Assembly: GCA_001643675.2 (NCBI GenBank)
Contig: LSRY02000039.1
Coordinates: forward strand, 868,001-932,000
Direction of reading: 5' to 3'
Length of the DNA stretch: 64,000 nucleotides
Origin: Monocercomonoides exilis PA203
Lineage: Eukaryota > Protista > Preaxostyla
Made by a program: the position numbers and the translations under genes. Below the pieces are notes generated by a model. It did not search any database. It saw only the letters and a list, made by a program, of their open reading frames with translations, and had not been told where the DNA came from. Each line of letters opens with the position of its first letter. Within the stretch, counting starts at the first letter, position 1. Below are positions 2,561 through 51,243 of the stretch, one piece after another.

Positions 2561-3308
2561 TTCAGATATCTTGATTCATAATTTTATATAGCGCAGTGTC
2601 ATGATGAATCCATTTATTGCTATCCGATGGGGTGCTTGAAGAGCTTGCCACTTCTAATTGTTTCAAGTTTCATTGTTGTCAAACACAATAATTTCATAAG
2701 AGATGAAGCAATACATTTATTCATATTTATCAAATAGAATAAAAGTAATAATTGCAAATGAAAAGTTCAAGTTAAACGTCAATGAATCAAATTACCAAAT
2801 ATCAAACCTCTGAATGATATTTAAATCAAACAAATTTTTGTTCATATAATTGAATATCAAACAAAGTTTACAGATGAAAGAGATTAAAAGGAAAACTTAA
2901 AGCAGAAGTTTACAAAATAACAAGTGGTATAAATATCCAAAATATGATCTTACCCATAATTGAATTGACAAAAATTGATCTGTTTGGAAGAAATTTTTTG
3001 TTAAAATAGTTCTTGCAGTTAAATTTTTAATATCAAAAACTAAATTTTGTATCATAGTTAAAAGATACATTATTTTCTTTGAGTATTGAATTGTTTTAAT
3101 TGTTTTTATTTTATTTTTGATTTATGTTTCATCCTTTCAAAAAAATGATAATAAGACTTTTTGACAAAGCAACTCTTGTGGTAATTTTAACACACTTTGC
3201 GAAATGAATAAAAAGATAAAGATATAATTTTGGAGTTACAAAAAAAAAAAAAGAAAAAAAGAAAAAATAGAATTGAATGATTTAAACCACAAAATAAGTT
3301 TCATTTTC

Positions 3309-4679
3309 TTAAACATTCACAAAATAATCAGAAATATTCAACGATAAATCAAGATAATATATTTTATTATCAAAAGAAATGAATCCATAAAGGCTTGCGA
3401 TGCAATCTTCATATCCTTCTTCTTCCAGCTTTTCAAAAACCTTCCTTTTCATTGTCTTCCTTTTCTCTTCTTCCTTTTCATAATCCTCATCCTCCTCATC
3501 CTCATCTTCTTTCAATCTTTCTGAAATCCTCAAAAAATTTAGCAAGCAATTTATCATCCAACTGTGAAAAAATGTTGGTTGCAGAATTTCCTCCAAAACT
3601 GCCTTAAATGCCCCTCCATTCAGCATGTCATCAATTTTCACTGCTTTGTTTTCTGCTGCTGTTTTCAACAAAGAAATGCACAATTTGCTAATTTCTCTGC
3701 AATATTCCCTTGCCGCTCGTAACAACAGAACAATGCTGCTCATTAGCCCATCAAATCCTTCATTCCACAAGGTGCATAAGAAAAAGCAAACATCAACAAC
3801 ATAGAGCCATCTCTCAACCACAAACACTTCGTCAGCTTCTTTTCTCTTCCAGTCAATGCATCTTGTCAGCTCCTCCAGTTCTCTTGTAACTTCTCTCACA
3901 AAACGCAGATCATTCACAATATCATCTTCCAAACTTTGGTCATTGTGAAATCTGTACATCAAAAACATCCAAGCAGATTGATATGCAAATCGAGTCAGAT
4001 TGTGATGCTCTTGATGATACTTGATGATTTCTTTGATTTCACTGACGTAAAGTTCTTGTTCGATAAACTGATAAGAAATTAGAAATATATCAATACAACA
4101 TAAAGGATATAGAAGTGAACATACACAATATCTATTGATGTGACTTAATGCAAATAAAGCCATTTCCACTTTTTTCTCAGTCTCCTCGTATTCCTCTTTG
4201 TTCAATGAAACCTTCAGAAGAAAAGGCACGCAAATTTGAAACAAATTTGAAAAAAATCCTTCGAAAAACAAAGCGTAGCATTCGCAAAGATCAATCAGAA
4301 GCTTTCCATCCTTTTCTTCTTTCATTTTCTTTTCTTCTTCAATTATCTTCTTCTCGAATATTTCGATCAATGAAGATTTCTTGAAACAATCAATACAAAT
4401 CCCTTTCAGTTCTTTGCTATATCCAACATGCTTCAGCAACAACAATGTATTTTCCATCGAAAGTTTCTCTTCTTCGATCATTTCATGAATTTTGTTGAAC
4501 ATTTCAAGATTGAGGAAAAAAAACAACTCGTCATTATTCATTTCATCAACCATTTTATTCATTTCTTCGATACTTTGTTTCTGTTTAGATTCAGTGAATT
4601 GTTCCAATTGTGAAAGTTTCTCTAAAAAAGTGAAAAATCAAAAGAGAAAAAAGAAGCAATTATTTATTTAACCATTCAT
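3309..4679 (-). CDS. Lineage-specific hypothetical protein (multicopy family, helical, E/K/L-rich)
   Basis: 432-aa ORF extended by micro-exon ATGAATG (4673-4679) over a 51-nt GT-AG intron (4622-4672). Probable 57-nt in-frame intron 4068-4124. Paralog at 1-735. Confidence 0.8.
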
Positions 4680-34725: not shown

Positions 34726-37700
34726 CTAATCATCTTCGAGATTCGGTTCAACTATGTCAACAGGAATGTTTTCTTTAACAAAAGCACTAACCATCGTCTG
34801 ATCTTCATCAAAAGCTTCATCTTGCCCTTTATCATCTCCGCTATACTTTACGTAATGAGAATTCAGCGAAAGCAAATTCTGTTTAATGTCTTCTTCTTCC
34901 TTTTTCAGTCTTTGAACCCTTTTACGTATGAAGCAGAATGCAGCAATGAAAAAACCAAACAAACAAGCAATTCCAAGTACCAATATCAGTACAACAGCAA
35001 ATAAAGGAAGCTTTGTTCGATTATTTGTAGGATCAATCTCTTTTTCTTTCTTTTTCGTTGCAACCAAAGTATTAGAGGAAACAAAGGTATTTTCTTGTGG
35101 ATTGCTAAGAACAGAAACAAACACTTCAAACCGTTCAATTGACGGATCCTCTGCAATTTCTTTTTTCAATGTGAATGTTGAGCGTGTCTCGTTGATAACA
35201 TCAGTGAGGAAAAATGCATAGACTTTGTTTTCTTTTTCGTTTTCGTTTGAAGCTCTATTCAAGTGATGATAATTTTCTTCATATTTGTTTGCTTCAGTTT
35301 TTCCAATTCCCGTCACATAACACTGCAAATAGCAAGGCAAAAAATATAATCCCTCAAGAACAACGTTGTAGTCTTCTTTGGACAAAAACATTGTTGCGCT
35401 TGTCAAAATGGGCACAAAACACGAAGATGTTCGAGTCTTCATGGCTTCCCCTCCAATGCTGCAGCCTCTGTTCCAAACCCAAAGCGGAGAAGTCTCATCC
35501 AGCAATCCATCAGAAACCAACGAATCAACTGACACCTCTCCCTGCCCTTCACAGCGGATGTTGTGGCGCGAAAATTGTGATCCCAACATAATTCCCACCA
35601 GCGAGAAATCACAGGATGACACTTGCAAAGAACCTCCGGTGATAAGCACACCAGAGCATAACGAGTTCGTAAATGAGCAGTTATTCATCTGAGAGCAGCA
35701 GTACTTTAAGCCAATCAGAGCTTCTGGAACATCACAAATGGAAGACAAAGCAGCATCTGATACTGAAGTTGAAGAAGAAAAAGAGGAACTGAAAGAAGGT
35801 GACAAAAATGAATTGCCTCGATTCGCAAAAATTTTTGAATGATTCATTGAATTCTGAGAATAATCTCCATATCCAATAAATTCGCAATTTCGTAGCAATG
35901 CTCTTGTTGACTCTAGTAAAATAAGAGCACTGCTAAATAATTGCATTTGAGAGTAGAATGAAGAATTTGAAAGCGAAAATTCAACAAAAGGATGATCAGG
36001 CTCAGAAGAAATTCTCTTCAAGCCTGTTGACAGGAGATTCAATGTGAAAAACTTACCATCTCCTTTCGAATCAAGAATGCTTTTCAATGTTAAATTAACG
36101 TTTTCCAATGATATAGAGTGCAAACAATCATTTTTTCCTCTGTTTCCCTCTGAGTGTTGGCATTCATGTTGATTAACTGGAGAACATTGCAAAGGAGCTT
36201 CATTTGACTGCAATGGAACGTCCACAACGAATAATAAAAGTGAAGAAGAAATAAACGTGTCCAAAGAAATAGAAACATCTTTGAAATCAATGAGATTGCA
36301 GTTGCCAAACACAAACAAATTTACCATCTCAATAAAGATTGTGAAAGATGAATGAGATATGTGCACCTCTCCCTTTGATGCAGACAGCAGTGTGATGCAC
36401 ACTGGACTGCTCTGCTGATCAACCTGTTTCTCAACATACGAAAAATGCTCGAGCTTTGTAATGCAACTATCAGCAAGAAACAAAACATCTTTGTCTGTTT
36501 TGAATTCAGTTCCAACAACCAAGTCCACAGAAGAAAGACAGAAAGAGGATGTGCACAAACACAAAGCATTGAACGTGAAAAGCGAATGAATGCTGCTGTT
36601 AAGAAGAATGCTGCGAAAAGGAGAAGGAGAAACAGAAGTAATTTTGATATCCTTTACTCGTATTTCTCTTTCCAATGGCACAGATGAAATAAGAACAATT
36701 TCTGCCATCTTTTCCTCTTCGCCATTTTGCTCCCATTTTTCCGAGAAGCTATTTTTCATTCTATTTTGCATTGAAATCATCTTTAAATTCCAGTTTTGCC
36801 TTCTTTTTGTTGCAGTATCAACTACGTCTGACAAATGCACAATGCCATCAGATAGTTCAGTACACGGATTGTCTTTTGATCCACAATCTTCTTCTGTTGA
36901 CGAAGAAACGGAAGAAAGTCCATCTACATCTTCCTTTTTTATCCCACAATAACATTTTTGATCTCGAAAAATGTCAAGCAAAATTTCAGTCACAACATTC
37001 ATGCTTTTATCATCTTTTTGATCAACAGCAAGTATTGAGTTATGAGTACTGAAATTATTCGCAATTGGATCAAAGAGAAATTGAACGAACGAAAGCTGAC
37101 TTTTTGGCTCACGGCACACAAAGCATACATCGCGCCCAAACGTTGCTTGGTTTTGATTACAAGAAAGCTTAATTATAAGAAAAGGAAGCAGAGTTCCTGA
37201 AGAAGGAGACGACGATGGAGATGAATCCACAACGCAAACGCCTCCTCCATGTCCACCAGCAGCAACAGTCTGACAGAAAGAAAACGTTGTTGTGTCGAGT
37301 GTGAAGCTATCGTCTTCCGAATAAAGGTCAATTTTGAGTGCTCCTCCGTAGAAAGAAGAATCAGATGAGCAATTTGAGAAAGAAGTATTAGTTATTGTGA
37401 CGGCCATTGGATGCAAATTAATTTTTGGAGAGGAAGTATTGATGGAAGATGAGGAGAAAGAAGAGCAGAATGAAGCGAATGATGAAGTGGAATGACGTGA
37501 GACAGAATTTTGTAGATGTGAAGCTGAAATGGCTGGAGAATTTTGCGTATCGAGATCATGAATGAAACTTGAGTCAATTTGCAGTAAACAGCCAGCACTG
37601 GTTGTTTCTTGCACATTCACTGCTGAAGTTGACTGAAATGCGAAGTGAAATAAATTTAGAGAAGCAAATTTGACGCAACCTCCATTAATTTGTATGATTG

Positions 37701-40113
37701 GAGAGCGAACATTTTGTAAGGTATAGTAAGAGGGAAGAGAAGGCGAATGATCATCGCCTTTGATTAGAACATTCGACAAAGTCAAGTCAAATGTGCGAAA
37801 TGGATCGAAATTGAACGATGCGAAATCCGCTTCAACAAGAAAAAGAGGAGAAAAAACGATTTGAGAAGTCGTGTCAATAACAAATGCCATATTGGCAACA
37901 GTCATCGCTTTGCGAACAATAAATAGAGGATGATCACGAGCAGACAACGTAGGTCTGATTCCAGTACTTGTCTGCCCTGAGCCTTTTATTTGAAGTGGAG
38001 AACGGCGAATTTCATAGCATTCATCGCTTCTGCATGCAACGTCTCCTTCCATTAACCATATTTCCCTCTCTATCTCTTCTGTAATCTGAGAGAAAGCATC
38101 TTTGAGCGTTGAACACGATTGCTCTTCAGAAATACCACAAATTTCAGAAGCGTATTCTGAATGAGCTTGTTTTTTTTGAACTTGAAATACGTCGTTCGTA
38201 GTTTTTGTTTTGTGTGAGTTGCTTTTCGTTGAATTCTCACTCTGCTCTGTTTCACAACTTTCATCAACTTCAACAAATACTTTTCCCTCAGAAATTGCAT
38301 TCACTTCTTCATTCAGCCTTTTGTTCGAAATCTCGTTATTCTTAACTCCACTGACAAATACCTTCCGCATGCCTGTCATAAGCCAAAAGTCAACATTTAT
38401 TGCAGTTAGCTTGCCTAACCTCCACAGAACCCTTTCGTTTCGTTTTGTGCTAAACGAATATAATGTGGGGCGAGTGTGATTCAAAAGCACTTTGTATACG
38501 TCGATAAAGAGTAGATCCGAGGCAGCTTCTTCAGGTGCTTGATTCTCCACCGAATTATTGTGGAAAAACGAAAAAGCGAGAAGTGGAGACGAAGAGTGCA
38601 ACGTATTGAAGCAATTAATCTCAAGTCCAGCACTCGCATTAAAGCTTTGACAATGAAGGAATGAGCATTCAGTAACCAAGGTATCAAATGAAAACAACAA
38701 AATATTAATTCCTCCAAAGTAACTACTTGCGCCGCAGCGAGAAATAACACAGTTTGAAATAATCGCGTCAGCATTCAAAGCAGCTGCTTGTGAAAGATTT
38801 GATTGCAATTGCTGAATTGTCTCATTAATCGATGCATAATTCTCCATTTCCCCTGAATTATTCACTTCAAATTGATGTTTGTAGTAAATCTGATTCGATG
38901 TGACATCTGAGAAAATAAGCGTTGCAGCTCCGCCAACCGCAGCATTACAATCCTCCATCACACATGAATCAATGTGCAACATTGAAATCATACCGAAAAT
39001 TGCTCCTCCAAATTCTTCTTGCTTTTCCGAAGTTCTGACTGAATTATTTGAGAAAGCACATCCTGAAGCTATTAGATGGCATCCAACCACATAGATTGCT
39101 CCTCCGCTAGAAATACTATGGCAATGCTTGAATGTGCATGATTGAATCTCCACATGACAGCCTTGAAAGCTCGAAAAAACACATAACGCACCTCCTGAGC
39201 AATAAAGATAGTTTCCTGGAGAGGCCGAACATTTTTCTTCAGAAATTGTATCATTGAGAAATTCGCATTGATAGAATAAAATATTTCCAAGTAAATATGT
39301 CTGGCTATATCGTGGCATTGGTGGCTTTTCTTGCGGCAATGTGGCTATAACACTTGAAAATGAGCGTCTGATCCCATTGAACGAAGAATTTCGTGCTTCA
39401 AAATGTTCATATTTAGCCACATTCTGGAACAGCAATCCATCAAACACATTTATGCATTTTTCCAATTTACAAGAAGAAATGCAAAGAAAATCAATTCCAA
39501 AATCTGAAATTTTTCGAGAAATGAAACGAGTTGAAGAAATATTTGCGAAATTAGTCGAGCTAATTGCTATATTTGATTCAGCTGATGTTGGAAAAATTGG
39601 ATTTGAACTTTGAAAGTGAGAAATAAAAGAAGAAGTTATCGAAACGAGACCAGAAGATGATTTGGAGAATATCATTAGATTTTCACGGGTTCTTTTCGAT
39701 TTTTCCGATTTTACAGAAACATTATTCATTAAAACAGTTCCTTTTGTTGAAAAGAAACTTCCTTCAGTAGAAGCTGTTAGCAAACAAAAATTTATTGAAA
39801 TTAATGCATCAGAGCAAATGTTGAAAAAATAGCTTGGCTCATTCATTGAAAAGTGTATATCAAAAATAGAAAGAGAACTGTTGCAACAATGAAAAACTGA
39901 TGAATATTGCAGCGATTTCTTTGCTATGTTATCGACAGATATAACTGTTGTTTCAAAAGATGAAGGGAATGGAAATAAATTGTGAAATATATTCGCAGTA
40001 GACTGCTCACAAGCTATTTTCTCCAATTTTGAAGATGATGAATTTTGAGTAAAAATGAAACTAAATAGAGATAAAACGCAAATGTACATCAACTTCATAT
40101 ATAAGTGGTACAT
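34726..40113 (-). CDS. Large type I membrane protein with GGA/beta-helix-like repeats and a short cytoplasmic tail; distant paralog of 7214-15160
   Basis: 1795-aa ORF; N-terminal hydrophobic stretch; GGAL, GGAIY, GGAIF, GGHGGGV..N.A.FGRDV; CGSKDNPC; TM LFAVVLILVLGIACLFGFFIAAFCFI-RKR. Confidence 0.88.
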   Translation of the reverse strand: MYHLYMKLMYICVLSLFSFIFTQNSSSSKLEKIACEQSTANIFHNLFPFPSSFETTVISVDNIAKKSLQYSSVFHCCNSSLSIFDIHFSMNEPSYFFNICSDALISINFCLLTASTEGSFFSTKGTVLMNNVSVKSEKSKRTRENLMIFSKSSSGLVSITSSFISHFQSSNPIFPTSAESNIAISSTNFANISSTRFISRKISDFGIDFLCISSCKLEKCINVFDGLLFQNVAKYEHFEARNSSFNGIRRSFSSVIATLPQEKPPMPRYSQTYLLGNILFYQCEFLNDTISEEKCSASPGNYLYCSGGALCVFSSFQGCHVEIQSCTFKHCHSISSGGAIYVVGCHLIASGCAFSNNSVRTSEKQEEFGGAIFGMISMLHIDSCVMEDCNAAVGGAATLIFSDVTSNQIYYKHQFEVNNSGEMENYASINETIQQLQSNLSQAAALNADAIISNCVISRCGASSYFGGINILLFSFDTLVTECSFLHCQSFNASAGLEINCFNTLHSSSPLLAFSFFHNNSVENQAPEEAASDLLFIDVYKVLLNHTRPTLYSFSTKRNERVLWRLGKLTAINVDFWLMTGMRKVFVSGVKNNEISNKRLNEEVNAISEGKVFVEVDESCETEQSENSTKSNSHKTKTTNDVFQVQKKQAHSEYASEICGISEEQSCSTLKDAFSQITEEIEREIWLMEGDVACRSDECYEIRRSPLQIKGSGQTSTGIRPTLSARDHPLFIVRKAMTVANMAFVIDTTSQIVFSPLFLVEADFASFNFDPFRTFDLTLSNVLIKGDDHSPSLPSYYTLQNVRSPIIQINGGCVKFASLNLFHFAFQSTSAVNVQETTSAGCLLQIDSSFIHDLDTQNSPAISASHLQNSVSRHSTSSFASFCSSFSSSSINTSSPKINLHPMAVTITNTSFSNCSSDSSFYGGALKIDLYSEDDSFTLDTTTFSFCQTVAAGGHGGGVCVVDSSPSSSPSSGTLLPFLIIKLSCNQNQATFGRDVCFVCREPKSQLSFVQFLFDPIANNFSTHNSILAVDQKDDKSMNVVTEILLDIFRDQKCYCGIKKEDVDGLSSVSSSTEEDCGSKDNPCTELSDGIVHLSDVVDTATKRRQNWNLKMISMQNRMKNSFSEKWEQNGEEEKMAEIVLISSVPLEREIRVKDIKITSVSPSPFRSILLNSSIHSLFTFNALCLCTSSFCLSSVDLVVGTEFKTDKDVLFLADSCITKLEHFSYVEKQVDQQSSPVCITLLSASKGEVHISHSSFTIFIEMVNLFVFGNCNLIDFKDVSISLDTFISSSLLLFVVDVPLQSNEAPLQCSPVNQHECQHSEGNRGKNDCLHSISLENVNLTLKSILDSKGDGKFFTLNLLSTGLKRISSEPDHPFVEFSLSNSSFYSQMQLFSSALILLESTRALLRNCEFIGYGDYSQNSMNHSKIFANRGNSFLSPSFSSSFSSSTSVSDAALSSICDVPEALIGLKYCCSQMNNCSFTNSLCSGVLITGGSLQVSSCDFSLVGIMLGSQFSRHNIRCEGQGEVSVDSLVSDGLLDETSPLWVWNRGCSIGGEAMKTRTSSCFVPILTSATMFLSKEDYNVVLEGLYFLPCYLQCYVTGIGKTEANKYEENYHHLNRASNENEKENKVYAFFLTDVINETRSTFTLKKEIAEDPSIERFEVFVSVLSNPQENTFVSSNTLVATKKKEKEIDPTNNRTKLPLFAVVLILVLGIACLFGFFIAAFCFIRKRVQRLKKEEEDIKQNLLSLNSHYVKYSGDDKGQDEAFDEDQTMVSAFVKENIPVDIVEPNLEDD

Positions 40114-42703: not shown

Positions 42704-43675
42704 GTGAGATTCAAAGAATGAAAGGATCCTTTTTTTCAGAATTTGAAAAAATAGTGCAATTTCTTATTTGGAGTAAGATGTTCTTTTATCTCCACAAGCA
42801 TTTCTGTTCAAATAAAAATATTTTCAATTCAAAAAAATGTGAGAAAAGATTTTAAAATTCTACATGTTTCAAAGAGTAAATAAAAATCTGTTTTATTGAA
42901 ATGAATAACATAAATGAATGAGAAATTCAAACGAACGATAACAATGCATAACTTTTGTTGCATATTTATAAATATTAAATTTTTTTTTTAAAACAATAAT
43001 AATTATTATAATTATATCTTTTATCAATCAATTTGAACAAAATAACAAAATACTCAAAAAAAGGCAGAATATTTTAACATATCAATCGAGAACTTCAATC
43101 TCTGTCACCACATTTTTGTAAAAAATTTGTGTTAAATATGCCATTTTAGTAGGCACATTAAACACAAAAGAAAAGTGATGAATATTTAATCTCAACAAAT
43201 TTCAGAAAGATAAATAAATAAAATAATAATAATAATAACTGAAATAAAATTCAATAATGAATGGAACATAAAAACAGAATCTAAATACAATGTGCGGGGT
43301 GATAAAAGGAAACATACACATATTTTTATATTGTTCCAATAAAATTGAAGAATTCAAAGAGAGGAAGATCAAAAAGATTAGAAAATAGCATAAATTTGTG
43401 TATCAAAGAAAGAAATAGAAGTTTAGGTGAATAATGATGCAAGGAAATTTTCATTCATCTCATTAGAATAAGAGAAAAGAAAAGATAATTTAAAAACAAT
43501 CAGTATGACATATAATTCAATAAAACAACCAAAGAAAATGTATCAATAACTCACTGCAAGTCAAACAAAATAAACAGCGTAGCGAATAAAGAAATTAAGA
43601 AGAGAGAAGTTTGAGATAAATCTAAATAAAGTTTTTCGATTCATTTAGAAAGAAAAACATATGATGGAAAGGAGG

Positions 43676-43775
43676 AAGAGAAGAGAAGAGAAGAGAAGAG
43701 AAGAGAAGAGAAGAGAAGAGAAGAGAAGAGAAGAGAAGAGAAGAGAAGAGAAGAGAAGAGAAGAGAAGAGAAGAG
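43676..43775. repeat. (AAGAG)20 pentanucleotide microsatellite
   Basis: Perfect tandem run downstream of the Tmc-like gene stop codon. Confidence 0.97.
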
Positions 43776-44046
43776 AAATACATTGGGCAGAGAATAATCA
43801 ATTTCAAGTCCATATTGTAAGGAATCAAGAAAGAGAAAGAGAAAGAGAGCGAGAATGAGAATGAGATAGAAAGAGAACATAAACACTCAAAACAACATGT
43901 GAAACAGTGCGTGAAATGAAATCCAATGAAATGAAATGAAAATAGAATAAGAATAAGAATAAGAAAGAACAAAAGACAGATAGATTGATAGATTGACTGA
44001 GTCCATTTTCAAACAGAATAATTCACACAACAATCATCGCTCCTCA

Positions 44047-47000
44047 TCACAGTCTGAGATCAGGTTCGTCCAACTGCTCACCTCCATCGCTCATCCCATC
44101 CATCTCGTTGTTCTCATTGTTTTCATTGTTCTCGTCTGTCTTGTTCTGCCCCGCTGAGAAATCGACCTGTGTCTGCGCGTATTTGATATCGTCGTCTGTG
44201 AAATGCTTGTCGAATATTCGAATCAAAGCCCTCTTCGCAGACATCTGCGCGGCAGCATTCGACGTCACAATCTGATCCATTATGATCGTCAGCCTCTGTC
44301 TGAGCAGAATGTGATCAGCACTGTGCTCTTTGAACTCCGAATACCCCGCCTGCGCCATCTCTTTCTCTTCCTCTGTGAACTGCTTCAGACACATCTGAAT
44401 CAGGTGCTGCATAAGACTCACAATCACTGAGCTTGACTCTTTGTCCTTCAGTGCTTGGATCACTGCCTGCGCTGAGTTGATGATGCGCCTTCTTTCCACA
44501 TCCCATTTTTTGATGTGCGTCACCATCGACGGCAGCATCACCATCTCCTTCTCGTCCTCGTCTGTCGGCAGCAGCTCCTTCAGCTTCTTTGTGTAGTTTG
44601 ACTCCTTCAGCAGCCCATTCCTCAGAGGCGTGATCACACACATGTACGACAGAAACACCAACACACACACACAGCACGTGATAATCGTGATGGTGTCCAT
44701 CGTCGTCTGCACAGTTGCCACGCCGCTGTCTTCCAGCTCTGTGGAGATGTGCAAGTTCCCGTCGCGCATGTCAAATGACAGGGCAGTGTGAAGGTAGAGA
44801 TAGTAGTCACTCGTCACATTCAGCGGACATGGTGAGTCATTCATGTTCAGTCGGTTGATTTCGTGCACGTAGAACTTGAACCGGCTGATCAAAGAGGACA
44901 TGCCCAGGATCTTCTTGTCGATGTGGAACAGTCTGTTTTGATATTCTGGCAGGTTGCACATGTATTCATGTTCCAAATAGCAATCTTTTTCCTCAAAGAG
45001 CATTTTCGTGTTCAAATCGATGTCTGCATGTGATGCCTTCACCAAGTCCACTATTCGATCCCCAGTGTCCTGTGAGTTCTCTGCCCCGTAATGAACTGAC
45101 GAGTGGATGCGGTCGTAGTAGCTCATCAAAGAAAAGATGTAGTCCATCATCTGCTGTCTGTCTGTTGTGAAGTGCGACGAGTTGCGCCAGACCGGATTGG
45201 TCGATTTTGGGTAATCAACGTTGCTGATGTATGTCAGTGCTGCTGTGTTATCGTGTGTCATACGCAGTAGAAAGTAGTGGATCATCGACAGAATCGTCGG
45301 GCGCAGGCCAGACAGAAAGATAGACGGCGCCAGGGAGTCGTGTGCTGCACACATGAAGAACCCGCACAGCCCCAAAGCCAGTCCACATACAAGAAAGACC
45401 AGCACACCTGCAAGTGTCTGGATGAACATCTTTGTCGACAGCGCTGACGGGAATGAAGCAAACATCGATGCCAGCTTCTGCATATCTGCATCCAGCTTGT
45501 CTTCCCACTTGCTGTCTGGAACGACATTCCTGATGATCCCCCTCATCGCCTCTTCTGCCTCGTCTTCATCGTCTGGAATGCGCACCTGCGGCATCATTGA
45601 GCGGTCGATGGCAACTCCTGTCTGCGGCTGGTGCGGAGTCACACCTGCTGTTGAGGATGTGTTTGTCCCTTGTGACGGTGTCTTCGCACAGTGCTGGGAA
45701 ATCGTGCCTCCATTCGCATTGCCACTGCTACTGCCGTTTGCCCCGTTGGCTGATCGTTCTGCTGCAGAAAGCGGCTGGAAGACTCTTGTGGTTCCGAACA
45801 AGGTAGCAGTCTGACCTGGAATGATTGAGTTTTCTGAAGAACTTGAAGAAGAGGAAGAGGAAGAGGATGAAGAAGACGATTCATCAGAGGAAGATGAGGA
45901 TGAACTGTCGGTTGAGCTGAAGTCAGATAGCAGAGTCGCTTTGCCTGTTCGTGATGTCTGTGAAGGAGTATGCTCAAAGTTCTTATTCTGCCCTTTCTTC
46001 TTCTCTCCATTCTTTTTATGTTTGTGTCGATGTTTCCTTTTTCCTCTCAGCTCTGTATCGTGCAATGTTTGAAACTGCTTTGCGATTTCAGACTGCTGCG
46101 AAAGAGAGGGAGAGAATGGCGGACTGATCAGGTGGGAAATGCTGGTGCTTGTTTGTGAGGTGCTCCCTGTGCGTGCGAGAAGCTGCTGCTGGAGAATTTG
46201 GTTCTGTTGCTGAAGAAGAGCAAGGTGCTGCTGCACTTGCATCTGCACAGAGGATGACGCAGAGAGTGTTGAAGAAAGAGGATGATATGTTCCTCCTGCC
46301 CCTCCGAATCCATTGCCTGTCCCGCCCACTCCATTCGCCCCGTTCGGCGATGTTGCAGTGAGTGAGTTCTGGTTCAGTGACTGCATCGTGGGCGACATCA
46401 GAGAAGAAGGACGATAGCCCAACTGAGGCACATGCGAGAGAGAGGACGCCTGGTGTATTTGAGGTGTGACCTCGTTTGACGTATTAAGTGACGTTGTGCT
46501 CAGCAAACTGCGACCGAAATAAGGTGATGTTTGCGGACGCTCTGAAGAAGGCAGACTGCCATTGAGCGACGCTGTTGCTGCCTGTGACGCAGCCGTCTTC
46601 GAGCTCTGGTTGAACAGCTTATGTGAAGCAGAGGCACCTGGATATCCCGACAAGTAGCTGTGCCCCAATGCCCCTTGGTTTGATGACGGGAGCAGCAAGT
46701 TTGTCGCACCGAGGTTGCCCTTCATCGGCCCAGGGACGCCTCTCAGCAGCGGAGACAGGCTTCTGCCAGGGTTGGCTCCCAAAGTGAGTCCCGCAGGCAT
46801 TGTGGCGAAGATGTTTGTGGGTAGTTGGGAAATCAAGGAAGGTGTAGAGACAGCCGCAAGCGGAGGATTAGAGCGTGCTGTGATTGAACCGCTGCGGGGT
46901 GTCTGGATGCGCTGGTTGACTTCCTCGGGCTTCAGGCGGGGGTCGCTGTCTTTGTTTGCTTCTTTAACCTTCCCGTCAGACGACGAGCGAGAACTGCCTC

Positions 47001-50000
47001 TGCTTCTGTTGCTGTTCTTCTCTCTCATCAGCGCTTCTCCTGTTGAGTCACTGATGCTTTGCCTTCTCATCCCATCTACAACTACGCCTGCTCCTCCTTT
47101 TGGCCTCATCTGATTTTGTTGTTGTTGTTGAATCTTTGTCATCTCTTCGATGTCGTTCAGTCCAATCACCTCATCAAACGTTGCGTCTCTTTCATCGCTT
47201 TCTTTTCTGTCTTCTTCATTCACTTTTCCTGCTTCGCTATTTGTTTCCTTCGCATTCTCATTCGCCTTCTCGTCGTTGCTGTCCTCCATCATCGCCTTCT
47301 CTATCACCTCCCACACTTGCTTGTCGCTCTGCACCGCTCCAACATTCCCTGCATTCCCCACAACTCTCTCAAATCTCCTCTCTTCCTCTTCTCTTCCTTC
47401 TCCTCCACTCACACCAGCTCCAACTCCAATGCCATTATGTCCATTCAGCTCCATCACACCCAGCACAGGCGACAGCCGCGTATTCGACGCTGAGTCTGGC
47501 GGAGGCGAGCCAGAACGCGATCGCGCTGAGTCCTGCTGCGAATGATGGCTTGATTGGCCAGAAGAGCCAGAGGAAGCAGAAGAGGCGGAGGAAGCAGAAG
47601 AAGCAGACACAACAGAGTTTCTGTGGTCGCACAGGGCAGTTGACTCGCCGTTGATGGCAGACGTGCCCATCCGCTGCATCTTGCTGTTGATCAATGACAG
47701 CTCATTCGGTGAGTTGAAGTCCAAATCATCCGAACGCTCTGAAAACGACCTCCCTTCCAACCCACCAGACAATGCATCTTCTTCTCCTCCTCTTCCTCCT
47801 CTTCCTTCCTTCTCTGCTCTTCTTCTTTCTTCCTCCTGCTGTTGCTGCTGATCCTGCTGCTCTCCCTCATCCTCCTCTTTGCCCATCCAACTCCCCTCCA
47901 CAACTCCTTTCTCTCCACTCACACTCCCACTGCCTGTGCCATACTCCTTCACCAGCTGCGATGTACTGTCTCTTATCTGACTTGAGCTCTTCTGCATCGA
48001 ATGTGCATCGCTCTGCTCATCCAACACACCCCCGTCGTTGTATTGCTCATCGTTGTACATATCCCCAGCTCCGTTCTGCCCTTCTGTGGATGCATCGTCT
48101 TCTCCATTTTCGCTTTGCAGCAGTCTCCTTATGATAGCTTGAATGTCGCTTTTGGGCACTTCCACGAGCATTCTCAGTGCATTTGCCCTGTTGTTGTTGA
48201 GATACTTCGCAATAAACACGAAAATCAGCGAAGAAGCGCCGAAGCAAATTGTGCCTGCAACTAAGCAGCAGAGCAGCAGATTCACTCTGCTTTTTTTAAC
48301 AACAGTGTTTGTCTCCTCCATATACGACTCCAGCGCTCTCTTCAGCCCATCAGTGCAAGGCAGGATGGTGTCATACATCATCATCAGCAGATGCTCCTCC
48401 AACATCGGCATTTCCCAGGGGGCATTCCCTTTCATCACAATCTGCCGCGCATTCTGAGTAATGCTGATGAGCACATCCATCAGAGAGTCCATCGAAATCG
48501 TCTGCGACACAATCTGCTTCGCGACCCGGTCGAAGCTGAAGATCGTCACGGGAATCGTCTTCGTCTCCCACGGTGTCATATCCGATGCCAATGAAGACAC
48601 TTGTGTAAGCTTGCCTTGCTGACACTCCGAAACCTGCTGGAAGATTGTTTGAAGAGCAGAAAGTGTCTGGATTCCGATGGTTGTATCATTCACTTTTGTC
48701 CAGTTGTACTCCATCTCGTGTATCAGCATCTGAATGGCAGTGGTGCAGTACTTGTTTGTGTCTGACGCAATGTGCGCAATGATGCCCAGGTTCTTCAAAC
48801 ATGTCTGGATTTTGCGGCAGTTGTTCACAAAAAAGGCGCAGGCGATAATCAGAATGATGATGTACAGAATGTGCAGCAGCATGAGCAACAAAGTGGAGAC
48901 AATCTGAATTCTTTTGGAGTTGCTTTCGTTCCCGTTGATCAGCAAGTCCTGCATCTGCGCCTCTACATCCGTCTTCTTCTTCTTCTTTTTCTTCTTCAGC
49001 GGCGGCTTTGCGTGTGTCGATCGTGAACGAGACGTCTTTCGTGGGTCTCCATCGTTGAACGAGTTGTGGTGAACCAGCCCAGGCGAGCGTGGCTGGTTAG
49101 ACCCAGCTGTCTGCATCTGACTGCCGTGTGCCTCTCCCCTCGTTCCATCGTCGCCCATCCCAACACTCAGCCCTATTGAAGCACCCATCGTGACGCTGTC
49201 TTCCATCTGGTCTGCGCGGTTGAAGATGATCTCAGCTGTATCGTCATCGTTGTAGATGTCCAACAGCAACTGCCCGTACATCCTCAAAATCTGCGTGTTC
49301 GTCGGATACGACCGCAGCAGCTCCTCAAAACAGCGCCGGCTTTCTGCCTCGCAATCCACCACAGTTGCCAGCTGCTCCACAATCGCTTCGAAGTTCGGGT
49401 TCTGTGTCGCCATCGCCTCCCACATCTCCTTCAGCGCCGTCTTCGCACTCACCCGCTGGTCTTCTGCTTGGTTGAGTAGCGCCTTGAATGTGAGAGATGT
49501 GAGCTCTGACCCGTTCCCTGCTGCTCCGCCTTCGCCCGCGGGGCCAAACGCCTTCCCGCCTTCCTTCGTCTTGCAGTACAAGATGAACTTCAGGTTAATG
49601 GAAGGAGACGCAATCCTGCTCTGTCTGTATGCCATGCCAGCTTTGACGCTGTTCTTGCGGTAGAACGTGAGGAAGTTGGCGTACTCGAAGTGCAGCTGGG
49701 CGTTGTCCTTGTGCCGCATCAGCGCCTTCGTGTAGACCATCTCCGCATACGACAGCATCGTGCTGTCTCTGTATCTTTTGTTCTGCAGAAAGCGCATACT
49801 CTTCTCCACAAGCGACGGATCCTTCATTTTCAGTGGAAAACCCGCCCCACTTCCGCCGCTTGCCCCACTCCCTGAGCCATCTCCTCCAGATGCCCCCGTC
49901 GAAATGCTCGGAAGCGGAAACGACTGCGGCGACGGGCAGGATGGAGTGATAGAAAGACCGATGTTGGCAGAGGAGGACGTTGCTGATGGTGGCGTTTGAA

Positions 50001-51243
50001 CAAGCGGCATGGCTAGCCCCGAGGCGTCTGGAAAGGCGCCTGGCAGGGAGCTGTTGCGACCGTGGGGCATCGACGATGCAATGTGCGCTGTCATTTCGAG
50101 GACAGACATCTCAATCAGCGGCTTCCCTTCAGACGTCAGCAGGAACAGCCGCTTTCTCCGCCGGTTGACGAAATAGACACACATGATGCTCAGCGCTACG
50201 CTGGCAAGAGCTCCAATCAGATAGAATATCCACACATATTCCGGGTATTTCTCCTCAAGCGCTATCCAGCCAATCTCTTGGAACAGTCTCATTGACCCGA
50301 AAATGACATAACGAATGCACATTAGACTGTTTCCCATCAGGTGATAGAACGGCTGCTTGCTGATTGTGTAGAAGATAAGCAGAAGGCTGGTTGCTACAGT
50401 TACAAAGCCACGCCAAAATGGCCACCCAGTGAGCATCCTCATCGCGAAAATAAGTCCAAATACAAGCGTTCTCTCAAATACATTGCATATCCCACTCGAT
50501 GAGCTAAAAATTCCACCATTCTTTGGATTGTGATTGAAATACAGAAGAGAAAATATATTTCCGAAAAGAAATACAACAATTAAGCTGAGGAGCGAACAGA
50601 TGAAGCTTGCTATCTGAAGAACATCAGAATCCAAGCAGGACAACTGACCAAAGCGAGTTACAAGTCCGTCGCTTGATGAAAAACATTCAAATGCTGATAT
50701 ATCACTCGTTATGATTGGAATATAAACAATATTAATAGAGAAGCTAACGAGCCATCTTAAAAGTGAAATGATCCAAGGTTGTGACCCAACAATTTTCTTA
50801 AAGAAAATCGCAACTATCGCCTGATAAAGAAGAAGCATAACATTATATCCAATCATGCAAAAAATAATATATGGAAACGCTTTTCCCAAAAGATTTGAAA
50901 ATGATGTTGCATCAATAAAGCCGATATAAAACGCAAGATTATCCACAGTTTCAGTTCCTGGTTTGAGGTGATAAAAAGAAATAGATAATAACTCAAGAGT
51001 TCCATATAGCCATAAAATAAAGGCCCAAGTGCTACTGGGATGTTTTTTCTGTGTATAGAGCATTAAAGAAACAAAATATTAAGGCAGACAACAAAAATTG
51101 TAAAAAAAGAAAACCTGCTCATAAATTGGATAAAAGAAGGAAAATATAAGTTCTTCTTTGTGTGAAAATGTTTCCTCTTTCTGTGTAGCTATAGCAGCAG
51201 CACTTCCAGTTGATGCAACGCTCTTTGTTTCATTGTCGTTCAT
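44047..51243 (-). CDS. TmcB/TmcC-like polytopic membrane protein with TPR-like region and C-terminal hemerythrin-like domain (~2376 aa)
   Basis: Exon 51115-51243, 66-nt intron 51049-51114, exon 44047-51048. About 8 N-terminal TM segments; TPR-like LHFEYANFL and ELLRSYPTNTQILRMYGQLLLDIYND; two further TM pairs; C-terminal QFTEEEKEMAQAGYSEFKEHSADH...KHFTDDDIKY. Confidence 0.85.

Follow-up and report, generated by a model that had tools for sequence, protein, structure and literature searches.

A hemerythrin-fold domain with a conserved half-site ligand pattern in TmcB-like giant membrane proteins of oxymonads

Gene and domain layout

We analysed a 64,000-nucleotide stretch of the Monocercomonoides exilis PA203 genome (contig LSRY02000039.1, positions 868,001 to 932,000), referred to below as the window, and focused on one gene on its minus strand that encodes a TmcB-like giant membrane protein. 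The gene occupies window positions 44047-51063 and consists of a single intronless open reading frame (ORF) of 2338 amino acids (aa) plus the stop codon, as judged from the ORF list and from RNA contigs; all features of the protein given below lie on the same minus strand. M. exilis is an anaerobic protist without mitochondria, in which Fe-S clusters are assembled in the cytosol, and the original prediction, made from the letters alone, had supposed an anaerobic host correctly. It had also described a Tmc-like polytopic protein ending in a hemerythrin domain from which exactly two iron ligands were lost. The residues quoted for that domain are present, but on the minus strand: read in that direction, positions 44170-44544 yield aa 2174-2298 of the ORF and reproduce the quoted residues exactly, whereas the plus-strand translation of the interval is meaningless.

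The domain in question lies near the C-terminus of the protein. The last transmembrane (TM) helix is followed by a K/R-rich juxtamembrane linker of ~22 residues (aa 2144-2165; 44569-44634), recognised from the translation and the charge count after that helix, and then by a hemerythrin-fold domain (aa 2166-2299; 44167-44568), here called the half-site domain, that was identified by profile search, AlphaFold2 (AF2), Foldseek, VIA-align and the ESM Atlas. An acidic, N/E-rich tail of 39 aa (44050-44166), read from the translation and not conserved among paralogs, closes the protein.

At its other end the protein begins with a multi-pass membrane region (aa 1-295; 50179-51063), with Kyte-Doolittle hydropathy peaks at aa 62-84, 97-115, 148-166, 216-234 and 277-295, the last helix being directly followed by a cluster of five K/R residues (RRRKR). 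A TPR_TmcB domain (aa 524-623; 49195-49494) was detected by Pfam (PF25474, E = 3.8e-15; score 56.3 bits, cut-off 27), which bears out the Tmc-like assignment. Next come a first TM-loop-TM unit found by hydropathy (48211-48891), with helices at aa 725-743 and 933-951 separated by a loop of ~190 aa, and a low-complexity, probably disordered stretch of ~930 aa (aa 952-1886; 45406-48210) that is rich in S, Q, G, E and K and gave no Pfam match. A second unit (44635-45405), delimited by hydropathy, alignment A2 and AF2, comprises TM3 (aa 1887-1905), a helical ectodomain of ~220 aa and TM4 (aa 2125-2143); BLASTP detected no similarity between the first unit and the second. The hydropathy peaks give at least five N-terminal and four later TM helices, in keeping with the polytopic character foreseen for the protein. 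A Pfam search of the full 2338 aa at E ≤ 1 returned no PAS domain, as had been noted before, and no HAMP, methyl-accepting chemotaxis protein (MCP) signalling, GGDEF, HD-GYP, kinase or cyclase domain; F-box and RING/CHY E3-ligase domains were likewise not found in it by Pfam.

Homology and fold of the C-terminal domain

Taken alone, the window copy scored below the Pfam hemerythrin cut-off (E = 0.13 and 0.048; 13.1-14.6 bits versus 25.3), and a single-sequence phmmer search of the PDB gave a bacteriohemerythrin as its best match at E = 0.055. These insignificant scores would suit a chance resemblance to hemerythrin motifs. The paralogs taken together gave a different answer. Profile A1, built from 29 domains of the M. 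exilis genome and 134 columns wide, matched the Methylococcus capsulatus bacteriohemerythrin (4xpw) over its full length at E = 4.6e-11 and the hemerythrin domain of DcrH (DcrH-Hr) at 1e-8. Searched against 1.84 billion representative proteins, the same profile returned 12,471 hemerythrin-type matches, among which ordinary bacteriohemerythrins of 130-140 aa scored at about 1e-13 to 1e-16. The Pfam family PF01814 itself was touched by 19 of the 29 paralogs, with a best E-value of 8.7e-7.

Structure prediction pointed the same way. AF2 run on A1 gave an N-terminal loop followed by a four-helix bundle of the up-down type (helices at 20-41, 46-74, 79-100 and 105-133) with a predicted local distance difference test (pLDDT) score of 92.7, which is the hemerythrin fold that had been anticipated. 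The top 14 Foldseek matches in the PDB were all hemerythrins, headed by DcrH-Hr (TM-score 0.83, root-mean-square deviation 1.8 Å); the Foldseek E-values were weak, at best 2.5e-3, while the ranking and TM-scores were clear. In an exhaustive VIA-align search DcrH-Hr reached Z = 17.8, as against ≤12.5 for generic bundles, and in the ESM Atlas bacteriohemerythrin clusters were found at TM-scores of 0.83-0.89. Since profile, AF2, Foldseek, VIA-align and ESM Atlas agree, we regard it as established that the C-terminal domain is truly homologous to bacterial hemerythrin and adopts the four-helix fold. Chance resemblance is refuted by the profile E-value against the PDB, by the number of profile matches and by the VIA-align Z-score, and its probability is negligible.

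Five ligands kept and two lost

In hemerythrin, Fe1 is held by three His and Fe2 by two His, Glu and Asp bridge the two irons, and O2 binds at Fe2 (PMC9388753). In the window copy the Fe1 ligands and both bridges are in place. An HxxxH motif (44311-44325) supplies the equivalents of H73 (44323-44325) and H77 (44311-44313), an HxxxxD motif (44188-44205) supplies H101 (44203-44205) and the bridging D106 (44188-44190), and a Glu aligned to the canonical one (44368-44370) corresponds to the bridging E58. At the two positions that serve Fe2 only, the translation has Arg for H25 (44491-44493), as placed by the profile alignment, and Gln for H54 (44380-44382). Where O2-binding hemerythrin has seven ligands, the window copy thus has five, and the loss falls exactly on the Fe2-only pair, as originally proposed. 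The accompanying claim of exact hemerythrin spacing held for the xxxxE, HxxxH and HxxxxD blocks and for the gap from Glu to His; the spacing as a whole (37/4/15/4/36/5) fits bacteriohemerythrin (36/4/15/4/36/5 in M. capsulatus) and not the shorter invertebrate numbering in which it had been expressed.

The five kept ligands were invariant in all 29 paralogs, which share between 46% and 23% identity with the window copy. Only 12 of the 134 alignment columns are invariant, and they include all five of these positions (hypergeometric P = 2.4e-6). Within the C-terminal 434 aa, conservation is highest in the hemerythrin-like segment, where 12 of the region's 14 invariant columns are found. The two Fe2 positions behave differently from one another. 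At the H25 position Arg is found in 26 paralogs, mostly encoded by AGA codons, and His in the other three; members from Blattamonas and Streblomastix have Arg there too. The H54 position, which maps just before a conserved Phe, varies freely (V in 18, Q in 4, I, A and T in 2 each, Y in 1). The loss of these two His with the other five ligands kept, whose conservation the original prediction had proposed to examine, is thus a conserved pattern among homologs, with the three exceptions at H25 and free variation at H54.

The surroundings of the site have changed as well. The conserved Fe2/O2-pocket residues of O2-binding hemerythrin are missing from the half-site clade: where canonical domains have W (90%; ahead of the H101 helix motif), Y (75%) and N (80%), the clade has L, variable residues and Q, respectively, and I has given way to F. 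A family-specific RQR motif (44293-44301 in the window copy) stands 4-6 residues past the second His of HxxxH. Its Q and second R are invariant and its first R is at least 90% conserved across alignment A1, and the motif was absent from the canonical and full-site hemerythrin domains that we compared. By helical periodicity the invariant Gln should face the solvent, and its predicted exposure suggests a conserved contact surface. When the seven ligand positions were scored in the 150 best library matches, the combination R-x-E-H-H-H-D with RQR was set apart from H-H-E-H-H-H-D.

If Arg took part in a purely polar arrangement, the domain could be a metal-free pseudo-hemerythrin. Arg, three His and two carboxylates would then form a buried network of hydrogen bonds and salt bridges that would either do no more than hold the bundle together or serve to bind a proton or small anion, as in pH or anion sensing, and the RQR face could serve for docking or as a scaffold. 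A cationic Arg fixed at a former metal-ligand position and a remodelled O2 pocket are both compatible with this, AF2 folds the domain confidently with no cofactor, and plant BTSL2 provides a precedent in a hemerythrin-like subdomain that has no metal centre (PMC12022348). Against it, three buried His and two carboxylates held invariant over such divergence and in three genera bear the mark of a metal site, no single Arg can pair with all five of these residues, and a core with a structural task only would normally become more hydrophobic over time. We consider a metal-free domain unlikely, if a serious alternative.

Distribution and history in oxymonads

The original prediction had treated the protein as a single odd case. 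A six-frame search of the M. exilis assembly (82.3 Mb, 101 contigs) gave 46 matches, ~30 of them at E < 1e-24, each ending an ORF of 1700-3600 aa. In all, the genome holds at least 69 ORFs with TPR_TmcB, ~33 half-site domains and at least 7 full-site members, so that the window copy is one paralog among many. The half-site signature was also found in Blattamonas nauphoetae, in Streblomastix strix and on metagenome contigs, and the oxymonad orthologs of the window copy thus extend to two further genera. In public databases the relatives are called "hypothetical" or "TmcB/TmcC TPR repeats domain-containing", and a few carry an automatic "hemerythrin-like" label.

A Pfam hemerythrin search of the genome recovered the full-site set, which consists of TmcB-like ORFs whose domains keep H25, H54 and with them all seven ligands, and which pass the Pfam cut-off. 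These paralogs (for example MONOS_2049 = P0159, and loci L038, L043 and L044) share the architecture of the half-site proteins, with TPR_TmcB and a hemerythrin domain directly behind the last TM helix. They differ from the window protein in keeping both Fe2 His, in having a conserved extension of ~60 aa in place of the acidic tail and in lacking RQR. Further TmcB-linked paralogs keep H25 without H54, or have lost H101, and these differing losses indicate some relaxation of the site in the wider family. In L054 (G000:C25:1074100-1075400) the H101 position lacks His, and in L046 (G000:C30:942263-945592) the HxxxH region is degraded; the wider TmcB-hemerythrin family samples several partial sites.

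In a maximum-likelihood tree the half-site domains (39 rows, three genera) formed a clade with 99/97 support. The window copy grouped with four M. exilis paralogs (100/90), and this group was sister to two Blattamonas proteins (99/81), from which it follows that its lineages predate the split of the genera. Because the half-site clade spans all three genera, its ligand pattern has been held since before that split. The three copies with His at the H25 position are nested inside Arg-bearing ones, so that His represents a reversal there. A single clade of half-site and full-site oxymonad domains was neither supported nor rejected (approximately unbiased test, p = 0.418). A word-indexed homolog search returned oxymonad proteins only, and a blank outside oxymonads means little as regards TmcB-hemerythrin fusions in other groups.

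The reversals bear on whether a second iron could still be bound. If the site remained binuclear, Fe1 would be held tightly and a weak second iron would sit on the bridging carboxylates and water, and its occupancy would report on the pool of labile iron in the cytosol, as happens with the iron sensors FBXL5 and BRUTUS. Three paralogs have regained His at position 25, and the Blattamonas member P0063 keeps H54 together with R25, which suggests that the second site could still be revived; neither bridging carboxylate varies, though a mononuclear site needs at most one or two; and hemerythrin-like iron sensing is established in eukaryotes (PMC12022348). But the positive charge of an Arg in place of an Fe2 ligand should keep a second cation away, the residue at H54 is under no constraint at all, and Pfam found no E3 ligase, F-box or degron-type partner domain. 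A labile second iron therefore seems to us improbable.

A further explanation is that the domain is a non-functional remnant of a full-site TmcB hemerythrin left to neutral drift. The varied ligand losses in other paralogs, and the few family members that are pseudogenes with in-frame stops, are what such decay would leave behind. It is contradicted by conservation: a relic would hardly be the most conserved segment of the C-terminal module, have twelve invariant columns of which five are ligand positions, retain its pattern in three genera and gain new invariant residues in the form of RQR. We rejected neutral decay as having very little chance of being correct.

Some individual members of the family deserve mention. 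P0004 of Blattamonas nauphoetae (3353 aa) has two hemerythrin-type domains, at aa 1495-1621 and 3187-3319; the internal one reads H-Q-E-H-H-H-D and groups with the full-site oxymonad clade, and the terminal one is half-site. Two adjacent TmcB genes may have been merged in the gene model, or the tandem may be real. L010 (G000:C37:62503-65988) and L011 (G000:C37:580488-583973) lie ~518 kb apart on one contig and have identical C-terminal domains, which points to a recent duplication. L030 (G000:C25:860043-861291), L040 (G000:C47:217535-220870) and L027 (G000:C60:351517-352942) have in-frame stops or very short frames; they are likely pseudogenes or fragments and include both half-site and full-site types. 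Arg also takes the place of H25 in two domains outside the oxymonad clade, P0114 (196 aa) and domain 1 of P0059 (710 aa), which retain all the other ligands. The closest grouping of P0114 is with a sequence from a bacterium (99/91), and the substitution of H25 by Arg may have arisen more than once.

Membrane topology, ectodomain and transcripts

Helix parity and the positive-inside rule would put TPR domain, disordered region and final domain alike on the cytosolic side. The charges around TM4 are basic after the helix and acidic before it, and the loop between TM3 and TM4 carries a pair of Cys, nearly invariant in alignment A2, together with NxS/T sequons. AF2 modelled the last 434 aa (pLDDT 87) with TM3 leading into the helical ectodomain, the last helix of which runs through TM4 into the cytosol and continues as the linker, followed by a short loop and the hemerythrin bundle. 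The best structural matches of the ectodomain in VIA-align were the chemoreceptor ligand-binding domains of PilJ (Z = 11.7) and McpN (Z = 10.8). These values lie in the range reached by unrelated helical bundles, and we therefore speak of a resemblance and not of membership in these families. A feature search of the C-terminal 435 aa in the ESM Atlas returned unnamed eukaryotic clusters and, as weak neighbours, PilJ and CZB.

Contigs from RNA libraries (four metatranscriptome runs of one study) followed the genome colinearly from 43786 to 46400 and showed no joint within the ORF. One contig measured 7425 nt, enough to span the whole ORF, and depth dropped off beyond ~43790. These assembled contigs fit a single unspliced mRNA. 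Repeats at 43700-43785 and 43910-44003 were left out of the read comparison, and a spike in depth at 43791-43881 is probably due to similar repeats elsewhere. A short tandem repeat (43661-43972) that gives runs of REEKR or SSLLF in different frames lies 3' of the stop codon. The neighbouring ORF (34726-40113, minus strand; 1795 aa) encodes a Cys/Ser-rich, repeat-like protein with a C-terminal TM helix and a charged tail, and is unrelated to the TmcB gene.

Comparison with known systems

Hemerythrin domains are known on bacterial membrane proteins, including DcrH and P1B-5 ATPases (PMC9388753). The best structural match to the half-site domain, DcrH of Desulfovibrio vulgaris (PDB 2avk, 2awc), is a methyl-accepting chemotaxis protein with a C-terminal hemerythrin. 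It is a membrane receptor of an anaerobe in which a TM-ectodomain-TM unit precedes a cytoplasmic C-terminal hemerythrin domain (PMC9388753), and a like arrangement is predicted for the M. exilis protein, whose host is also an anaerobe. The site of DcrH is complete, with seven ligands and O2 bound at Fe2, whereas the M. exilis protein is missing two. HAMP and MCP regions stand between membrane and hemerythrin in DcrH; none was detected in the M. exilis protein by Pfam, and its domain starts ~22 residues past the last TM helix. Unlike DcrH, the host of the half-site domain is a eukaryotic TmcB-like giant.

The best sequence match, the M. capsulatus bacteriohemerythrin (PDB 4xpw, 4xpx), has nearly identical ligand spacing and shares with the family the blocks D-x-x-[H/R], F-x-x-E-E-x-x-M, HxxxH and HxxxxD. 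It is a stand-alone soluble O2 carrier with a full diiron site and a pocket Trp, while in the window domain R and Q stand where the two Fe2 His would be and L stands in place of Trp. On the membrane side, a comparison can be drawn with the tiny macrocyst proteins TmcB and TmcC of Dictyostelium (PF25474), which have TPR_TmcB and a multi-pass membrane character in common with the oxymonad proteins. We know of no hemerythrin domain in Dictyostelium TmcB or TmcC. The oxymonad proteins are much longer and have two TM-loop-TM units. Dictyostelium tmcB has been reported to function in macrocyst formation and cAMP signalling, with late induction in hypoxia (PMC12750705).

FBXL5 and the plant proteins BRUTUS and BTSL2 use a hemerythrin-like fold as a eukaryotic regulatory sensor, as proposed for the half-site domain. 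They are soluble E3-ligase components with a different ligand set, unlike the M. exilis protein, and the H2 subdomain of BTSL2 has no centre at all and so no precise half-site (PMC12022348). CZB domains offer a functional analogy only: they are C-terminal four-helix bundles that carry a mononuclear metal on chemoreceptors, and have no detectable homology to the half-site domain, their appearance as a weak ESM Atlas neighbour (0.82) being at a score that often arises by chance. CZB binds Zn through three His and one Cys.

In the paper on the M. exilis genome the word "hemerythrin" occurs only for a gene of bacterial origin linked to oxygen stress, and our literature searches found no paper that joins TmcB-type proteins to hemerythrin or describes a conserved half-site clade. 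What is new here is the conserved half-site version; hemerythrin sensor domains on membrane receptors were already known.

Discussion

The reading that we prefer, with a probability of roughly one in two, is that the half-site domain holds a single metal at the old Fe1 site, has Arg in the Fe2 site and acts as a cytosolic metal or redox switch on a receptor-like protein. The domain would sit in the cytosol directly behind the last membrane helix and bind one metal ion, iron or another divalent, through three His, Glu and Asp. The Arg guanidinium would fill the vacated Fe2 site and balance its charge: from established hemerythrin chemistry, exchanging Fe2+ with its bridging OH- (net +1) for Arg+ would leave the net charge of the site unchanged. 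With one metal at Fe1 and Arg in the Fe2 site, it would follow that the domain no longer binds O2 end-on as hemerythrin does. Instead, metal- or redox-dependent changes in conformation or stability would act as a switch at the cytoplasmic end of the protein, which is receptor-like and has an ectodomain similar to the helical-bundle sensors of chemoreceptors, and the RQR face may be the contact surface for a regulated partner. In favour of a single-metal switch we count homology and fold, the ligand pattern and its conservation across the three-genus clade, the conservation of Arg, the remodelled pocket, the RQR motif and the like position of the domain in full-site paralogs, behind their last TM helix. 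The charges around TM4 with the Cys pair and sequons of the loop, and the colinear presence of the gene in RNA libraries, count on the same side.

Several points weigh against it. The invariant His, Glu and Asp could serve a metal-free polar network or the binding of a non-metal ligand, and the losses of ligands in other TmcB paralogs of M. exilis are varied. Because no output domain (kinase, cyclase, MCP, HAMP or PAS) was found, the signalling role goes by analogy. The Z-scores of PilJ and McpN fall under the caution line for helical bundles, and assembled contigs of one study do not alone prove transcription.

At a broader level, and more tentatively, oxymonads may have turned the diiron hemerythrin into a mononuclear site of three His and two carboxylates, with Arg replacing the second iron, and may have expanded it into dozens of TmcB receptors alongside diiron paralogs that jointly monitor iron, O2 and redox state in the cytosol. 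It is the two-iron site that defines the chemistry of hemerythrin, and a clade in which half of that site has long been kept and the other half is probably filled by Arg is a natural experiment on what a single hemerythrin iron can do, for which the intact sister paralogs in the same genome are built-in controls. The TmcB-hemerythrin family is also a major unannotated part of the membrane proteome of M. exilis, the model eukaryote without mitochondria. If the family is a sensor, it would offer an initial clue to what TmcB-type proteins do, a group that occurs widely among protists and is little understood.

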